Assembly: GCA_029953675.1 (NCBI GenBank)
Contig: JAMWBK010000008.1
Span: 806,001 to 870,000, forward strand
DNA length: 64,000 nucleotides
Source: Rhodosorus marinus CCMP1338
Lineage: Eukaryota > Plantae > Rhodophyta
Direction of reading: 5' to 3'
The position numbers and the translations under genes are program-made. Positions 4,087-63,836 of this stretch are shown piece after piece. Below the pieces are notes generated by a model. The model was not told the DNA's origin and ran no database searches. It saw only the letters and a list, made by a program, of their open reading frames with translations. Numbering within the stretch: the first letter of the stretch is position 1; each line of letters begins with the position of its first letter.

Positions 4087-5901
4087 CTACGGATGCCATT
4101 TGTATGTTCCCGTGTACTTAAAGCCGACTCTCATAATCAGCTCATCTGCTTGCTCAGGGCCTCGAGAACCATACTCGTATGGTATGAGCTTGAACCTCTT
4201 ATCCTCAATGGACTTCAGGAGAGGCGTAAACACTTTCCAGGATTCCCTCAGCTCGTCATCCCGAACGAACGAGGACTTGTCTCCCCTCAACGTATCGAGG
4301 ATAAGTCTGGTGTACGCATCTGGGAGCTGTGAATACGTATCCTGAAAGCGCTTGTTATAGCTTAAATCCAATTCTGTAGTCACGATATCATTGGAAAGTC
4401 CTGGTTCCTTCACGTTTGTCTTCATGTAGATAGCCTCTCCTGGTTGCACGCGAACCACTAGTTCGTTGGCCGGTACATCAGTCTCAAACATAAAAGTTGA
4501 GGCAGGTGGGCGCTTGAACTGGATTCGGATTTCAGTTTTTCTCTCGTTCAGAGCCTTTCCAGCTCGCATGATAAAAGGCACACCATCCCACCTGGGGTTA
4601 TTGATGCGAAATACAACTACTGCATAGGTGGGTGTGACTGAGTCATCGGGAACTGTTTTATCCTCCTTGTACCCTGGTTCCTTCTCATTGCCCAAGTACT
4701 GCCCGAGGACAACCTCATCGAGTTGAACTGGATCGAACGCGCGGAGCACCTTGACCTTTTCATCTCTAACATGCTCGGAAATCTCGGAGCCTTCACCCGC
4801 GAACTTTGTCGGCGGTTCCATCGCAAAGAGGGTAAGCACCTGGCGACAGCAAAGGAAAGGTTCTTGTCCACTCAGTTTCACCAGTTTCTAGACGGACTCA
4901 GGTGCAACACCCAAGTACGCGTGAAGCATGATACCCACAACGCTTCAACGAACCTGAATTAGATGATTCTGCATGACGTCACGAATTATTCCGTACTGGT
5001 CGAAATAGCCTCCTCTTCCTTGCGTTCCAAAGTCTTCCTTGAAACTTATCATCACGCTGGAGATATGATTGCGATTCCATATGGGCTCCAGGAAGGTATT
5101 GGCAAATCGAAGGGAGGAGAGATTCTGCGTCATCTCCTTCCCCAAATAGTGATCGATTCTGTACACAATATCCTCGGTAAATATGGCAGACATGTCCCTG
5201 TCGAGCTGCTCGAAAGATTCGGAATCCTTTCCAAACGGCTTCTCCACGATGACACGAGTCCAACCTGTTGTACTCATCCCAACTTCCTATACGCGGTCGA
5301 CGGAAGGAAAACTGGTTTAGCTGCAATCAACCAAATTGCGTCAAGCGTTTTCAGTCCAGCTGATGCGACTTCACGATTAGCCCTGCTCGAGATACCTTGA
5401 TGATCGCTGCAACATCCGTAAACACGTTTGGTGGGATGGCAAAATAATAAACCCTGTTGGCCTTGGATGATGTTTGCTGGGCTTCGTGTGCCTCTAGCTT
5501 AGCTGCGGCTGCAGACATCGCCTTCGCGTCATCGTAGCCTCCCGAGGAATATATGCACAGCCGCAGAAAACTCTCTACTTGATCATCTGAGCCATGCTTT
5601 ATCAAAAACGGTCTCATCTTGTCCCTGAACTCATCATCACTCATTTTTGATCTCGCATACCCGCAGATCATATTACTGTCGGACAAGAAACCGGACGTGT
5701 ACAACGAGAACAAGGACGGATAGGTCTTCACAGCAAAATCCAGAAAATCAAACACGATTGACACGTCACAACATCAGTCTCCAGTCTCCACACGTCAAGG
5801 GATCGCCTACCACTTACCTTCTTCTTCGCCAAATCACCAGATGCGCCTATTACAACAACGCTGAGGGCTTCCTTCATGAAAGGAAATTCGTGCCCGGCCA
5901 T
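4087..5901 (-). CDS. G6PD: Glucose-6-phosphate 1-dehydrogenase, cytosolic type; exons 5901-5818, 5725-5396, 5286-4954, 4839-4087
   Basis: Motifs [13 protein letters not shown] (NADP binding), [31 protein letters not shown] and [13 protein letters not shown] are present. The start context is aaaaccATGG and there is no transit peptide. Confidence 0.97.
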
Positions 5902-12415: not shown

Positions 12416-13417
12416 CTACTTCTTCAGTGCGCTTGTCAGCTCTGGAACGGCTTCAAAAAGGTCTGAAACGAGCCCGTAATCCGCGACGGTGAAAATCGGT
12501 GCCTCTGGATCCTTGTTGATAGCGACAATTGTCTTCGAGTCTTTCATTCCCGCCAAGTGTTGGACGGCGCCGCTCAGGCCAACAGCTATATACAGCTCAG
12601 GAGCCACGACCTTACCAGTTTGTCCCACCTGCATATCGTTCGGACAGTACCCATCGTCAACCGCTGCACGAGTAGCGCCGACCGCGCCGCTCATCGTATC
12701 CGCTAGCTCCTCAATGAGTCGGAAATTATCACCGCTCTTCAAACCACGCCCACCAGAAACAACGACGCGGGCGGAGGTAAGCTCAGGTCTTTCGCCAGAA
12801 TCCGTCAGTTGCTCAGATTCCCAAGAAGAAAGCTTGTTCTCTTCGTCAGAAGTGAGCGTCACTTTCTCAAATTCAGTGGTATCACCCTCACTTTTCCCAA
12901 ATGCAGTACCACGAACAGTAATGACCTGAACTGCGTCAGATGACTTCACCCTCGCCAACGCATTTCCGGCGTAGATCGGTCGGACGTATTCGTTTGATCC
13001 TTCGACGGACACGATGTCCGAAACTTGAGAGGAGTCCAGCTTGGCTGCGACTCTTGGCATTACGTTCTTACCGAACGTAGTAGCTGCGGCAAGCAAGTGC
13101 GTGAAAGAGTTCTCTTTCTGCAGCTTGAGCACCACAGGAGCGAGCGTTTCAGCGACCGGGTTCTTCATCCCAGAACCAGCTGCTACAAAAACTTTTCCTA
13201 CGCCACTTGGTGCAGACTTGACGTCAGAGCCTTCTCCGCAAACAAGCATAGAAACAGACCCAGATCCGACAGCACGTTTCGCTGCAACAACTGCCGCAAC
13301 GGAGTTGCCATCAATTATACCCCCGCTCGCCTCAGCAACCACCAAAGCATGCATCCGCCGTCGAAGCTCACCGATCTCACTAAGCGACCTCCTCAAAACT
13401 CCTGGATATCGAAACAT
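12416..13417 (-). CDS. etfA: Electron transfer flavoprotein alpha subunit, mitochondrial, intronless
   Basis: 333-aa ORF containing [79 protein letters not shown], with an Arg-rich presequence. Confidence 0.97.
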
Positions 13418-30874: not shown

Positions 30875-33657
<2,783 letters not shown>

Positions 33658-34059: not shown

Positions 34060-35359
34060 TCAGATTCCCTTCATCTCGAAGGAGAGATCATCCTCGTCTA
34101 AGGTGTCTTCATCACCGATCGAGGGCGGCTGTTCCCCCGTCTGCTGGAAGAAGCCCAACAGATCCTCAACGTCGAGTTTTGACCCCATGTAGACGGGAGC
34201 TCGTTGGTGGACAGTCGTCGGGACAATATCAAGAATTCTCTCCCACCCTGTGGTGGCCTTCCCCCCGGCGTTTTCGATTAGGAAAGCCATTGGGAAAGCT
34301 TCGTAAAGTAGACGAAGCTTGCCCCGTCGATGAAGTCGGTCAGTCGGGTACATGAAAACTCCCCCGTAGAATAGTGTGCGGTGAATATCGGCAACCATTG
34401 TGCCAATGTAACTGGAGAAGAAGAAGTATCAACGTCAATCATGGCATGCTCCTAGGCTAGCAACCGTTGTGTTGCTGGGAGGCACAATACTTGCATTACC
34501 GAAGCGAATAGGGCTTTCTCGTCTCATCTGTGGGAAACTTAATGCTGTTCACGTATAGCCTTGTAGATTCGTTCCATTCATCCGAATTGCCTTCATTGAC
34601 AGAATAAATGTTGCCTCGATCTTTGATTCGCAAGCTCGGTTGAGTGAGAACGAACTCGCCAAGGCTGGGATCCAATGTGAATGCATGGACTCCATCGCCA
34701 GTACTGATGACAAGACTTGTTGAGCTGCCATACATTGCATATCCAGCGGCAGCAATCTCACTTCCCTTCTGAAGGATGGCCTTTGTAGCCTCCTCAACCG
34801 TGCGGATCCCACCTGCATCCTGGAGCCTATAGACTGCGAAAATCGATCCCACCGATATGTTCGCGTCTATGTTCGACGAACCATCCAACGGATCAAACGC
34901 TATGGCGTACTTTGCCGAGTTCAGATTCCGATCCAATACTAGCGCCATATCTTCGCTTTCGGACACCATAATCGATACCTGGGATAGGATACAAGAGCAA
35001 AACCGTATTCGCTGTTCCACTTTAGAGATCTAAGGGCCTGGAAAACGGACACAAGCTTCCTTTCTCTTCACGGAGATATTGTGCACCTTCTCGCAAGCCT
35101 CAATATTCGTCTTGAAAGTGTCATTTGCCAGCGTTTTTAAATCCTTTTCAGAGTCTGACTGGAAGTTTCCGATACCTGCCAACCCATAGAGCTTGGCGAT
35201 CCCGGACCTTCGAACACAAACATCAGTCACCTTGCATGCAAGCTGGACCGCGGTCAACAGGATCGTCAAGTCACCCCTGGCGTGATTATGCGCCCGCTGT
35301 CCATGCAGAACATATCTCGTGAGGGTGATCGAGTCTAAACCCCTCAAGTTTTCATCCAT
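34060..35359 (-). CDS. FBP: Class I fructose-1,6-bisphosphatase (cytosolic type) with substituted catalytic residues; exons 35359-35087, 34978-34500, 34411-34060
   Basis: [44 protein letters not shown] and [14 protein letters not shown] are present. There is no transit peptide or plastid redox insertion. Confidence 0.93.
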
Positions 35360-56189: not shown

Positions 56190-57035
56190 TCATTCCGAGC
56201 TCTTTGCGTTTGACCGCATGATTGCAGTCACTCGTGCACGGTCCTTCATAAAGTTCTCGCGAAGGTTCTGAGCCTTTCTGCGTTTTTCTTCTCGCTCCTT
56301 GTATCGGTAGAAGTTTGGCATGCCTTCAAAGGATGCTGACTTCTTACGTTTGCGCTCTTGTTGGCGAGTTATGATATCTGCGGCCTTGTTCGCTGCATAT
56401 GACTTCGTGACCACACGGAATCCATCTTCATCTACCGTGCTATTCATCGCCGCTCTCTGAAGCCTTTCTTGATTCTGATTGTAGAAAAGAAGCGCCGAAG
56501 GCGGTGTTTGACTTTCTTCAGAGGAGAGAACGGCCTCTTTTTTGTTTTCCCTTACACTTAGGTGTGTACTCACCTCCTGTTCTTCAACTTCTTGCATTAA
56601 TTCGGCTGCCCAAACTCGGACTTTCTCGTCACCAGGATGTGCCTCCTTGTATTCCTTCAGAAAACAATCCAACCCACCGGAGAACTTGAGGTCAACGCAA
56701 CTTCGTAGCCGGCTGAGCTTCTCAGCTGGCATGTCAGTCCGCAGCGCTTCATTCAAAGCGTCCTGCGACTCCATCTCTACCCTCGCAAAGCATGTCTTAA
56801 GGACACCTTCGCCTTTGTCCAGGAACCCGATTTTCACGTCGCGAACCTCTCCAAACTCCTCAAGAATCACTCGTAGCGCATCCTCATCCTGGCTGCTCCC
56901 CGGTAAGTTGGCGACGAACAACACTGGCTTGGTTGATCCCTTCTCGCGATGCTGCCGAACGTAGACCAAGTGCTTGACGCCATCGTCGAGATCAATGGAC
57001 CAGATCACGTAGCCTTCTTTCGTTTTCTGAACCAT
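56190..57035 (-). CDS. RRP7: Ribosomal RNA-processing protein 7 (RRM-like N-terminus plus RRP7 C-terminal domain); intron 56573-56475
   Basis: HLVYVRQH...VLFVANLP...FGEV, then [10 protein letters not shown] and [29 protein letters not shown], the RRP7 C-terminal pattern. Confidence 0.8.
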
Positions 57036-58212
57036 ATCAGTTAATTTTTTATCCCGTTGGCTCCATCTCAACCTTCTCAATGGGGAGATAGCCGTCTACC
57101 AACCCCCAGCCGATTCCTCAGAACGCACCGGGAGGTGCATCCATGACCATCTCCGACCAGACTCCGGTGACTTGATACTGGTGGGTTTGGGTATGGACGA
57201 TGAACAAGCTGCGATGCTCAGATTATTGTACACGGAAAAATTCATCACCTCTAGCATCAGTTCAGACTTCGACAAAGGACACCATCGCTGCCTCTTTCAA
57301 TTTCAGTAAAGGATATTGAACCAACGCCATCCCTTGACGTCTCCTCCTCTCCGAAGGCTTCCTGCTGGCAAGGGGTGAAACCAGCAAAGACAGCGGAGAC
57401 GAAAAAAGTGGTCAGATAGGTGTACAGGCCTGACGAATACATAAAATATTCTGCAGTATGGCAGCAGGCTTTGGACCTACCCCGGAGCTCTCCCACTACT
57501 CCTAACCCCTCGCCCCTACTCCTATGCCCATCGACGGCAGAGAGCTCGTCATCCCTAGACCTCAATCACTATCACCTTTCAAAGGACACGCGGACATAAA
57601 CAATTAGTCAATAAAAAAACATTCTTACGATCTATTCGCCACAAGTTTCTGTAATTTCTATATAATTGGTTTATACTACATGTCTTGTAATAATATAAAT
57701 ATACTTACGATCAATAATAAAGATATATTTTTGAATTTCAAGATTAGTTTCGAACTGATTGGCTATATAGAAGATAATGGATACTGATTCTCTCCTTTTT
57801 TTGGAAGAAGTTCTTTTTGTTTTTTGGTAGATTCTAAGACACACGAGATGGTCCAATCAGGACTGGAGTTTCCCTCTTATGTTTGTTTTTATTTAATAAA
57901 ATGAATAATGAGTTAAGGGACTTGGGATGGCGCTCAAGTTGATATATTTAGCTACTTAGAGAAGAAGGGTTGATGGTGGAGATGGGCATAGTGCTGGGGG
58001 TGTTGGAGAGGAAGGTGGGGCTACAGCTGCTGCGTCAGAATGGTTTAGGTTTGTTCTGGAATCTCTAGAGCTTTGATTGCTAGTGGGACTACTGGTTTTT
58101 CTCTTTTTAGTGTTGTGTGTGTGTGGGGGCGGGTGGGTGGGTTGGGGCAAGGGATATTGAGGTTGGTGGTTTTGGTGTTCTGTCTTTTTTTTGTTTCTTT
58201 GGGATTGAGGAG

Positions 58213-61928: not shown

Positions 61929-63836
61929 ATGGGGGAGGAGGTGAAGGTGGAGTCGGAGGGTGCACCGAACGGAGTGGTGCCTGATGGTAGCCCCGGTGAG
62001 GATTCGATGGCGCCGAGTGGGGATGGGAAGGATGGTGAGAAAGATCGAGGGAGGAAGGATCGGGAACGTGAGAGGAGTTATCGGGACCGGGATAGGGACC
62101 GACGAAGGGATTCTCGTGAAAGGGACCGGGACCGAGAGCGCATAAGGGATAAGGATAGATACCGGGATCGTAATAGACACCGGGACTATGATCACGACTA
62201 TGATAGGAGACGGAAGGATCGGGATCGAAGGCGTGACAGGTCACGGTCTCGTTCTCCCAGACGAAGAAGACGAAGGTCTAGATCTGCATCCTATTCTAGG
62301 TCTCGCTCGCGGGATAGATACAGGCACAGACGATATAGGGATCGACGGTCGAGGAGCCCTAGTAGGGGTGGAAAGAGGAGACGAAGTAGGAGTAAGGGGA
62401 GAAGCCCGGATAGGTACCGAAGATCTCGGGATGAGAGGAGGGGTTCGCCCGGCGGAGGTGCTGACTTTGATCCGTCGAAGCAGTTCCGCGACGAGGAAGA
62501 GGAAAAACGGCTCGCTGCGGAAAAAGAAGTTGCGGAAATGGAAAGAGACTTGAGGACAATATTCATTTGGCAACTTTCACAAAAAGTAAGAGAACGGGAC
62601 GTGTTTGATTTGTTCAGTAAGGCGGGAAAAGTTCGTGATGTGCGCCTTATTATTGACAGAAGGACTGGGCGTCATAAGGGCGCTGGTTATGTTGAGTTCT
62701 ACTACAAGGAGGCTATTCCAAAGGCCATGGAACTCAACGGACAGGCGATACGCGGCTTTCCAGTTGCAGTCAAGCCATCCGAAGCAGAGAAAAATATAGC
62801 GGCGGAGATGGCAGCGAAGGACGCAGCTGCAGTTGGCGCAGCCGCGTCGGCAACAGCAACAGCAACAGCAACTGCGGATGCCAAGGAACTTAACCAGGCC
62901 GATCTTGCAACGGTTGCTAGCATGGCGAAACCTACACCTGGTGCCCAAGGATTCACCAAGCTGTACGTGGGGTCCGTGCACTTTTCAGTTTCAGAAGATG
63001 ACCTCCGCACCATTTTCTCGCCTTACGGAGATCTAGCTTCTCTTCAGCTTCATCGAGATGCGGATACTGGAAGGTCCAAAGGATTCGGATTTATTCAATA
63101 TTCTAAGCATGAGTCAGCGCAGAAGGCGTTGGAGCAATTGAACGGCTTGGAGCTGGCTGGGCGCGCTCTGAGAGTTGGCCTCGCATCAACGGAAGCTCTC
63201 CGGCTTGGAACGACAGCTGCGGCAATGAGCGGTGGACAATTGAACCCTACCACGGGCGAGCAACCAGGAGAAGGTGCCACCGCTGGTAGTGTGCCCACGG
63301 TCCTGACCACCGCTGATCGTGATGGTCTGAACGAGCTCGATGATGGTCAAGACCGCGGATTGGCGTTGACTGCAAATCAGAGAGCGCAACTGATGCAAAA
63401 GCTCTCCCGAGGAGAAGAGATTGCACCTAGCGCTCCTGCGGCTGCTGACGCGGCTGCGCAAGGAGCTGCGATAACGGCTCCGGGGATGGTAGCGACTCTA
63501 CCTGGATACAACCCGCCTCTAACAGTTTCTCGAGCACCGTCTCGATGTCTCATGCTTCGAAACATGTTTGATCCTCAGGAGGAGACGGAGCCGGATTTCC
63601 ACATGCAAGTTGCCGAGGATGTCAGAGATGAGTGTTTGGAGAAATTCGGACCCTTGAAGCACTTGATCGTTGACAAGAACAGCGCTGGCATCGTCTATCT
63701 AAAGTTTGATCAGCTTCCACATGCAGTTGCTGCAAAGGCGAGCTTGAGCGGGCGGTTTTTTGCGGGTAAGCAGGTGATCGCCGAGTTCATCGCTGAGCCC
63801 ATTTATCAGCAACGCTTTGCCGACGTTCAGGACTAG
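61929..63836 (+). CDS. RBM39: RBM39/CAPER-like splicing factor (RS domain, two RRMs, linker, UHM), intronless
   Basis: 635-aa ORF: RS/RD region, ERDLRTIFIWQL...DVRLIIDRRTGRHKGAGYVEF, KLYVGSVHF...GRSKGFGFIQY, RAQLMQKL, and CLMLRNMFDPQEE...EDVRDEC...GRFFAGKQV. Confidence 0.95.
   Translation: MGEEVKVESEGAPNGVVPDGSPGEDSMAPSGDGKDGEKDRGRKDRERERSYRDRDRDRRRDSRERDRDRERIRDKDRYRDRNRHRDYDHDYDRRRKDRDRRRDRSRSRSPRRRRRRSRSASYSRSRSRDRYRHRRYRDRRSRSPSRGGKRRRSRSKGRSPDRYRRSRDERRGSPGGGADFDPSKQFRDEEEEKRLAAEKEVAEMERDLRTIFIWQLSQKVRERDVFDLFSKAGKVRDVRLIIDRRTGRHKGAGYVEFYYKEAIPKAMELNGQAIRGFPVAVKPSEAEKNIAAEMAAKDAAAVGAAASATATATATADAKELNQADLATVASMAKPTPGAQGFTKLYVGSVHFSVSEDDLRTIFSPYGDLASLQLHRDADTGRSKGFGFIQYSKHESAQKALEQLNGLELAGRALRVGLASTEALRLGTTAAAMSGGQLNPTTGEQPGEGATAGSVPTVLTTADRDGLNELDDGQDRGLALTANQRAQLMQKLSRGEEIAPSAPAAADAAAQGAAITAPGMVATLPGYNPPLTVSRAPSRCLMLRNMFDPQEETEPDFHMQVAEDVRDECLEKFGPLKHLIVDKNSAGIVYLKFDQLPHAVAAKASLSGRFFAGKQVIAEFIAEPIYQQRFADVQD

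Follow-up and report, generated by a model that had tools for sequence, protein, structure and literature searches.

Can a fructose-1,6-bisphosphatase (FBPase), a textbook control point of gluconeogenesis, be retained by selection as a ligand-binding protein after losing the residues that activate its catalytic water? The question is raised by NDN08_006124, a gene located in a 64,000-nucleotide stretch (hereafter the window) of a 2.1-Mb contig from the red alga Rhodosorus marinus CCMP1338 (Stylonematophyceae; JAMWBK010000008.1, positions 806,001 to 870,000). The protein encoded on the minus strand of the window at 35359..34060 is 100% identical to KAJ8902804.1, the product of NDN08_006124, which is annotated as a "hypothetical protein". 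A preliminary description of this DNA, made from its letters alone, had read the gene as an FBPase with altered catalytic residues and intact ligand-binding sites, and had suggested that it encodes a pseudoenzyme serving as a metabolic sensor or regulatory subunit. The pseudoenzyme interpretation is supported, as it was upheld by every computational check run; among the non-catalytic roles that would agree with the sequence data, being a sensor is one of several. We consider it probable that NDN08_006124 is a conserved FBPase-derived pseudoenzyme, a ligand-binding and non-catalytic (or nearly so) regulator of cytosolic gluconeogenesis that may act as a sensor, a buffer or a regulatory subunit.

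Replacement of the water-activating residues

Residue positions such as Asp74 and Glu98 are given below in mammalian (pig) numbering, relative to which the numbering of the R. marinus protein is shifted; all gene features are on the minus strand. The phmmer alignment of the protein to the rabbit, pig and human FBPase chains is gapless from residue 26 through the motif that ends the catalytic loop, where a 13-mer of the query stands opposite GDQVKKLDVLSND. Because the alignment is ungapped there, the lysine encoded by AAA at 35135..35137 is assigned to the Asp74 position; the alignment of homologues places it likewise, and the Asp74 to Lys change pointed out in the preliminary description is thus confirmed. 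That description had also seen a charge swap between positions 72 and 74. This is true of R. marinus, in which an Asp codon (GAT, 35141..35143) occupies the position of a Lys found in 98% of canonical sequences, but not of its two orthologues P0003 and P0004 (presented below), in which position 72 is Asn or Ser while Lys74 is constant.

The second altered motif, VSESED, had been left as either a substitution of Glu98 or a one-residue insertion. In the FBPases of red algae and fungi this motif is VSEE[ED][ED]xA, equal in length to the VSESEDMA of the window protein, which therefore has an E98S substitution (Ser codon AGC, 34955..34957; Val in the two orthologues). The insertion was ruled out on the same grounds, and the gap introduced by HMMER relative to the mammalian enzymes falls further downstream, where mammalian FBPases and the others differ in length.

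Both lost residues are otherwise nearly universal. In the best 120 of 7986 homologues, once the four clade-type rows were excluded, Asp74 and Glu98 were each present in 116/116 canonical sequences (red algae, fungi, amoebozoans and others). Within the same 120, Lys74 was found in P0001-P0004 only. On the scale of the whole family, 7628 matches were obtained when 1.84 billion cluster representatives were searched exhaustively with HMMER, and the best 149 of them span bacteria and eukaryotes; position 74 is Asp in 124 of the 129 representatives aligned there, and position 98 is Glu in 125 of 135. Single substitutions of Asp74 or Glu98 in the pig enzyme reportedly lower the turnover number (kcat) by a factor of 10^3 to 10^4 or more, in work of Kurbanov et al. 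from 1998 and of Kelley et al. from 1996. The preliminary description had treated the pair as water-activating residues, and they are so described for a pig-liver structure, in which a water bridging Asp74 and metal is the presumed base and deprotonates a second water coordinated with Glu98 (PMC5639204).

The R. marinus protein and its two orthologues form a clade in which these losses are concentrated in one region. The canonical set has 108 columns conserved at 93% or above (≥93%); 92 of these are unchanged in all three clade members and 102 in at least one of them. Six are altered in all three, namely position 67 (Gly to Ser), 72 (Lys to Asp, Asn or Ser), 74 (Asp to Lys), 98 (Glu to Ser or Val), 130 (Val to Ile) and 247 (Ser to Thr). 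Four of the six sit among the 14 conserved columns of residues 51-98, a segment in which the catalytic loop ends C-terminally and the strand with Glu97 and Glu98 follows. At position 67, the Ser codon of R. marinus is TCA (35156..35158) and the canonical residue is Gly in 98% of cases. We infer from these replacements that canonical FBPase activity has been lost or drastically reduced. Because it has neither Asp74 nor Glu98, the pair taken here as the mark of a competent FBPase, NDN08_006124 should not, as judged by its sequence, be annotated as EC 3.1.3.11.

Retention of the fold and of the ligand-binding sites

Outside these positions the protein has the characteristics of an FBPase. Both Pfam domains are matched over their full length, PF00316 (FBPase N) with 201.7 bits and PF18913 (FBPase C) with 163.3 bits, against cut-offs of 34.8 and 27 bits, respectively. 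The FBPase N domain begins at residue 11 after the first ATG, and there is neither a transit peptide nor an N-terminal extension. The whole core was aligned by phmmer with the solved rabbit, pig, human, yeast, plant and E. coli FBPases, with E values down to 1e-94. An AlphaFold2 model, for which 92 homologues served as input, had a mean predicted local distance difference test score (pLDDT) of 88.8 and a predicted template-modelling score (pTM) of 0.90; confidence was low only at the extreme N-terminus, at the tip of the dynamic loop (residues 67-71) and in the last ~25 residues. When this model was searched with Foldseek, the top 50 matches were all FBPases, with target-normalised template-modelling (TM) scores of 0.89-0.96. 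The best named homologues are annotated as "Fructose-1,6-bisphosphatase, cytosolic" and come from Gracilariopsis, Galdieria and Porphyridium, and the loop-170 redox insertion is absent, in a comparison with the red-algal cytosolic enzymes. A framework separating cytosolic FBPase (cyFBPase) from cpFBPase1 and cpFBPase2 has been published (PMC7195585). On the sequence characters listed, the window protein belongs to the class I FBPases and is of the cytosolic type, its localisation being a predicted one.

The residues that hold ligands are kept, and every item of the list of retained residues given in the preliminary description (metal, substrate/fructose 2,6-bisphosphate and AMP-site-like) was present in the alignments. 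The metal ligands are E98 (Glu97), D120 and D123 (Asp118 and Asp121) and E288 (Glu280), query numbering being followed by the canonical one in brackets; D69 (Asp68) is present as well. The loop that carries metal ligands and contacts the 1-phosphate is intact at 34865..34894 (Asp118, Leu120, Asp121, Ser123 and Ser124). The contacts to fructose and the 6-phosphate are likewise kept: N219 (Asn212), R251 (Arg243), Y252 (Tyr244), M256 (Met248), Y272 (Tyr264) and K282 (Lys274), together with R284 (Arg276). Most residues of this site are invariant in our alignment A1, the three clade members included. As the pocket and the metal ligands are conserved, a fructose (bis)phosphate would be expected to bind at the active site. 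Arg243 of FBPases reaches into the active site of the neighbouring subunit, and since it is kept, the protein most likely still oligomerises, with itself or with another FBPase.

At the putative AMP site, the loop residues A-x-G-D-L-T, with T32 (Thr31), K114 and Y115 (Lys112 and Tyr113) and Arg140, do not differ from those of the canonical red-algal enzymes. The acidic C-terminal tail noted earlier is also present; it comprises residues 341-367 (34063..34143), with 9 acidic residues and 1 basic, and is predicted to be disordered. All three clade members have such an extension, of 27-54 residues with 9-10 acidic versus 1-3 basic, and canonical FBPases do not. These two features would suit a protein whose active-site pocket is irrelevant and which acts as an AMP buffer or scaffold, soaking up AMP or binding partners through its surface and its clade-specific tail; duplicated FBPases of howler monkeys offer a precedent (PMC13651202). 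Such a role would have no need of Asn212, Tyr244, Tyr264, Lys274, Glu280 and the metal ligands, which are nonetheless strictly conserved, and we regard it as improbable.

An intact, transcribed gene beside a canonical paralogue

The gene consists of three exons with an open reading frame (ORF) of 1104 nt, encoding 367 amino acids (aa) followed by TGA. Exon 1 (35087..35359) holds codons 1-91, beginning with the first ATG at 35359, and encodes the putative AMP-site loop ARGDLT and the catalytic loop 52-72 with its altered motif. Exon 2 (34500..34978) runs from codon 92 to the second base of codon 251 and encodes VSESED, the metal-binding loop and NEGN of the sugar site. Exon 3 (34060..34411) extends from the last base of codon 251 to the TGA (34062-34060), and encodes a stretch that ends in GKLRLLYE (the stretch has Tyr264, Lys274, Arg276 and Glu280) and the tail. 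The two introns, of 108 nt (34979..35086) and 88 nt (34412..34499), are both GT-AG, in keeping with the earlier view of an intact, intron-containing gene.

Transcripts agree with this model. P0121, a full-length ORF from the MMETSP transcriptome of a second R. marinus strain, is 98.1% identical to the window protein, has both K74 and S98, and is spliced across both introns, which provides the cDNA confirmation called for in the preliminary description. It differs from the window protein at 7 residues, 3 of them in the acidic tail. Two partial transcripts, P0002 and P0123, are also present in the MMETSP and JGI data and are spliced across intron 2. Two side observations were made in these data. 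P0121 has Glu, and not Asp, at the metal-3 ligand position 68 (residue 69), and Glu is the usual residue there in non-animal FBPases. A further MMETSP ORF, P0122 (113 aa), reads from exon 1 into intron 1; an intron-retaining isoform of this kind would truncate the protein after the catalytic loop.

The R. marinus genome also contains a canonical paralogue, NDN08_007516 (P0124, 348 aa), which is 59.6% identical to NDN08_006124. It has KKLD and VSEED, a canonical metal loop and no transit peptide, and it is transcribed. A tblastn search found no second FBPase copy in the 64-kb window itself.

Nothing was found in favour of the view that the replacements are an artefact or that the gene is a decaying pseudogene. 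K74 and S98 are found together in the full-length ORF of an independent strain's transcriptome, and the changes are shared by orthologues in other taxa; a sequencing or assembly error was rejected on the evidence of these independent transcripts. Decay was rejected as well: the frame is whole, the splice sites are canonical, the intron-1-retaining P0122 is accompanied by a fully spliced form, 92 of the 108 conserved columns are intact in all three clade members, and the rate of nonsynonymous substitution (dN) is 0.18 with synonymous substitution (dS) saturated. We therefore regard artefact or decay as extremely improbable. The possibility that NDN08_006124 is the only cytosolic FBPase of R. 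marinus was ruled out by NDN08_007516. All three circumstances named at the outset as speaking against a pseudoenzyme (a sequencing error, an unexpressed or decaying gene, a sole cytosolic FBPase) are thus excluded by the second-strain transcripts, the orthologues and the canonical paralogue.

A stylonematophycean clade with a fixed Lys74

The preliminary description had called for a search of other algae for orthologues with the motif K-D-L-K. What the orthologues share is Lys74 and the loss of Glu98; the full motif is not shared, position 72 being Asn or Ser. P0003 is a JGI transcript contig (L001, 1254 nt, intron-less), 75% identical overall to the window protein, and reads SDSEKNIKELAND and VSEVEK. 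P0004, from the stylonematophyte Purpureofilum apyrenoidigerum, reads SDSDKSLKELAND and VSEVEK. The two have in common D74K, E98V, G67S, the loss of Lys72 and the acidic C-terminal tail, and in both, none of the metal ligands or of the contacts to the sugar and the 6-phosphate is lost. Throughout the clade of three, position 74 is invariably Lys, encoded by the synonymous codons AAA (R. marinus) and AAG (L001), and positions 72 and 98 are variable. In the loop beside the 1-phosphate and metal site, P0003 and P0004 further show Ser123 to Val, Ile126 to Val and Asp127 to Gly. The changes at 123 and 127 fit a relaxation of selection on catalysis and not on the sugar pocket.

The three sequences were monophyletic in 200/200 neighbour-joining bootstraps. 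Across classes, the canonical red-algal FBPases are 74-81% identical among themselves in the core, as compared with 56-65% between them and the clade and 77% within the clade. Comparison of the window coding sequence with L001 gave the dN of 0.18 quoted above, which is the sole usable estimate given the saturation of dS. Tajima relative-rate tests indicated a mild acceleration at most, dependent on the outgroup. By these estimates the whole protein is under strong purifying selection, within a clade sample that is small (n=3).

Purpureofilum P0004 is of mixed composition. Its residues 1-60 are 79-90% identical to NDN08_007516 and only 50-60% to the divergent type, while the remainder is 83-100% identical to P0003; on these identities it is either a chimeric assembly or a gene-conversion product. 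With either origin, the mixture indicates that Purpureofilum, too, has both FBPase types. Neither a motif-specific DNA pattern scan of JGI metagenome contigs, which found no further clade members, nor a protein-seeded scan, which gave only FBPases of 43-44% identity and none near enough for the clade, added to the three sequences.

Proposed binding without turnover

Taken together, the results are best explained by a gene duplication, followed by loss of the water-activating Asp74/Glu98 pair and subsequent upkeep of the gene by selection. With the FBPase fold, the four acidic metal ligands, Asp68, Arg276, the fructose/6-phosphate pocket and the AMP-loop residues retained, the protein would bind its ligand without turning it over. 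Candidate ligands are fructose 1,6-bisphosphate (F1,6BP), fructose 2,6-bisphosphate (F2,6BP) or fructose 6-phosphate (F6P), and possibly AMP. The fixed Lys74 would probably place a positive charge where the third metal and the water are otherwise found, holding the 1-phosphate instead of allowing its hydrolysis. The protein may act as a regulatory subunit alongside the active paralogue NDN08_007516, and the acidic disordered tail may be an added interaction or autoregulatory element.

Several observations weigh against this proposal. A metalloenzyme that is still active would equally be expected to retain the four acidic metal ligands together with Asp68 and Arg276, as all three members do. 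Part of the lost function could conceivably be replaced by the Glu that directly follows position 98 in all three (SE-x-E), or, in R. marinus, by the Asp at position 72. The clade comprises three independent sequences only, one of which (P0004) has the chimeric N-terminus described above. Finally, the neighbour-joining bootstraps gave no sister group for the clade within the red-algal cytosolic FBPases, so that the duplication is not placed; this is probably due to the long stem branch of the clade.

The first of these points leads to a different explanation, namely that the protein is a neofunctionalised and still active phosphatase, with F1,6BP or a similar sugar phosphate as its substrate, an altered mechanism of hydrolysis, and kinetics or regulation unlike those of the housekeeping paralogue. 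It might employ two metals, with Lys74 as a third cation stabilising the transition state, or use the Glu at position 99 as a base. Not only the metal-site residues (Glu97, Asp118, Asp121, Glu280, Asp68 and Arg276) but the entire substrate pocket is strictly kept in all three members; Lys74 is fixed and not variable, which suggests a selected new role in the active site; and the evolutionary rate is raised only mildly. Against this stand the invariance of Asp74 and Glu98 in the close homologues and their near-invariance family-wide, and the identity of the two residues as the proposed base system (PMC5639204). Moreover, with Ser in R. marinus and Val in its two orthologues, position 98 is not under selection for a chemical role, and in P0003 and P0004 the 1-phosphate site is eroded still more, by Ser123 to Val and Asp127 to Gly. 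Weighing both sides, we find an active phosphatase rather unlikely.

To return to the pseudoenzyme, a more specific and considerably more tentative version of it can be formulated. The stylonematophycean D74K/E98x proteins might be dedicated receptors of a fructose bisphosphate (F1,6BP or F2,6BP), in which Lys74 replaces the third metal and the water and the ligand, in place of being hydrolysed, is clamped under an engaged 52-72 loop. Heterotetramers formed with the active paralogue, or proteins that bind the acidic tail, could then transmit the conformational change that depends on the ligand, and triose-phosphate export would be coupled to the cytosolic synthesis of floridean starch and floridoside. 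Such a receptor would be a sensor of glycolytic flux that evolved naturally from an FBPase.

An expressed, full-length paralogue in which the base pair is replaced and the ligand contacts are kept, conserved between genera, amounts to a natural experiment that parts binding from catalysis. If F1,6BP or F2,6BP is indeed bound without turnover, a eukaryote would have a protein dedicated to sensing sugar bisphosphates or to serving as a regulatory subunit. It would then inform our view of carbon partitioning into cytosolic floridean starch and floridoside in red algae, and biosensors for F1,6BP could readily be built on its scaffold. What the third metal site contributes to the FBPase mechanism could also become clearer from the fixed Lys74.

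Genomic surroundings

The window has a GC content of 48.6%, and no tRNA genes were found in its 64 kb by ARAGORN. Just downstream of the FBPase stop lies a short ORF on the plus strand (33466-33657); its last exon resembles an RRM/UHM-type domain, and it had no Pfam match at E<=1e-3. At 4087-4881 (-), ~29 kb from the FBPase paralogue, an ORF matches the C-terminal domain of glucose-6-phosphate dehydrogenase (PF02781, E 8e-78). Other genes in the window encode an electron-transfer flavoprotein alpha (12416-13417, minus strand; PF00766/PF01012), an RRP7-like rRNA-processing protein (56190-57080, minus strand) and an RBM39-like protein with RRMs and an RBM39 linker (61929-63836, plus strand).

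Comparison with known systems

The closest known system is the canonical cyFBPase, as represented by pig and human FBP1 (PDB 1EYI, 1CNQ and 5Q0C) and by NDN08_007516. The window protein is like it in its Pfam domains, fold (TM scores of 0.92-0.96 to solved FBPases), metal ligands, pocket, AMP-loop residues and Arg243, and is 43-45% identical to the mammalian FBPases. It differs by D74K, E98S, G67S, K72D and S247T, by the additional 27-residue acidic tail, and by lacking the N-terminal extension that cyFBPases of red algae typically have. Our literature search found no paper on an FBPase pseudoenzyme in algae.

A signalling role of a plant cytosolic FBPase is part of the earlier literature: Arabidopsis FINS1/cyFBP is said, in work of Cho and Yoo from 2011, to act in fructose signalling independently of its catalytic activity. 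FINS1 is a normal, active enzyme that moonlights in sugar signalling, whereas the red-algal case is a separate paralogue without the catalytic residues; FINS1 is not known to bind a ligand as a sensor either.

A further near precedent is provided by the howler-monkey FBP1 copies HMFBP1B/C/D (Genome Biol 2026), which are inactive through N- or C-terminal truncations and have been proposed to be AMP sponges (PMC13651202). As in R. marinus, they are constrained duplicates of a cytosolic FBPase that exist beside an active copy and are proposed to act by binding a ligand. The monkey copies are recent and truncated; the red-algal protein is full-length and older (being shared between genera), with its base pair replaced by point changes and its pocket kept.

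Degenerate FBPase-like proteins seem, from their sequences, to have arisen repeatedly among protists, in several lineages. Of the best 149 family representatives, about a dozen are without Asp74 and/or Glu98, and none of these has been functionally named. They include P0148, P0158 and P0171, P0192 from MMETSP, P0205 from the choanoflagellate Helgoeca nana, and P0222, P0231, P0236, P0254 and P0271; one cluster has 9 protist members from MMETSP and JGI. Most have also lost Glu97, Asp118, Asp121 or Glu280, or have insertions in their loops, and they have no relationship to the stylonematophycean clade. The latter stands out among degenerate FBPases in keeping all but the base pair.

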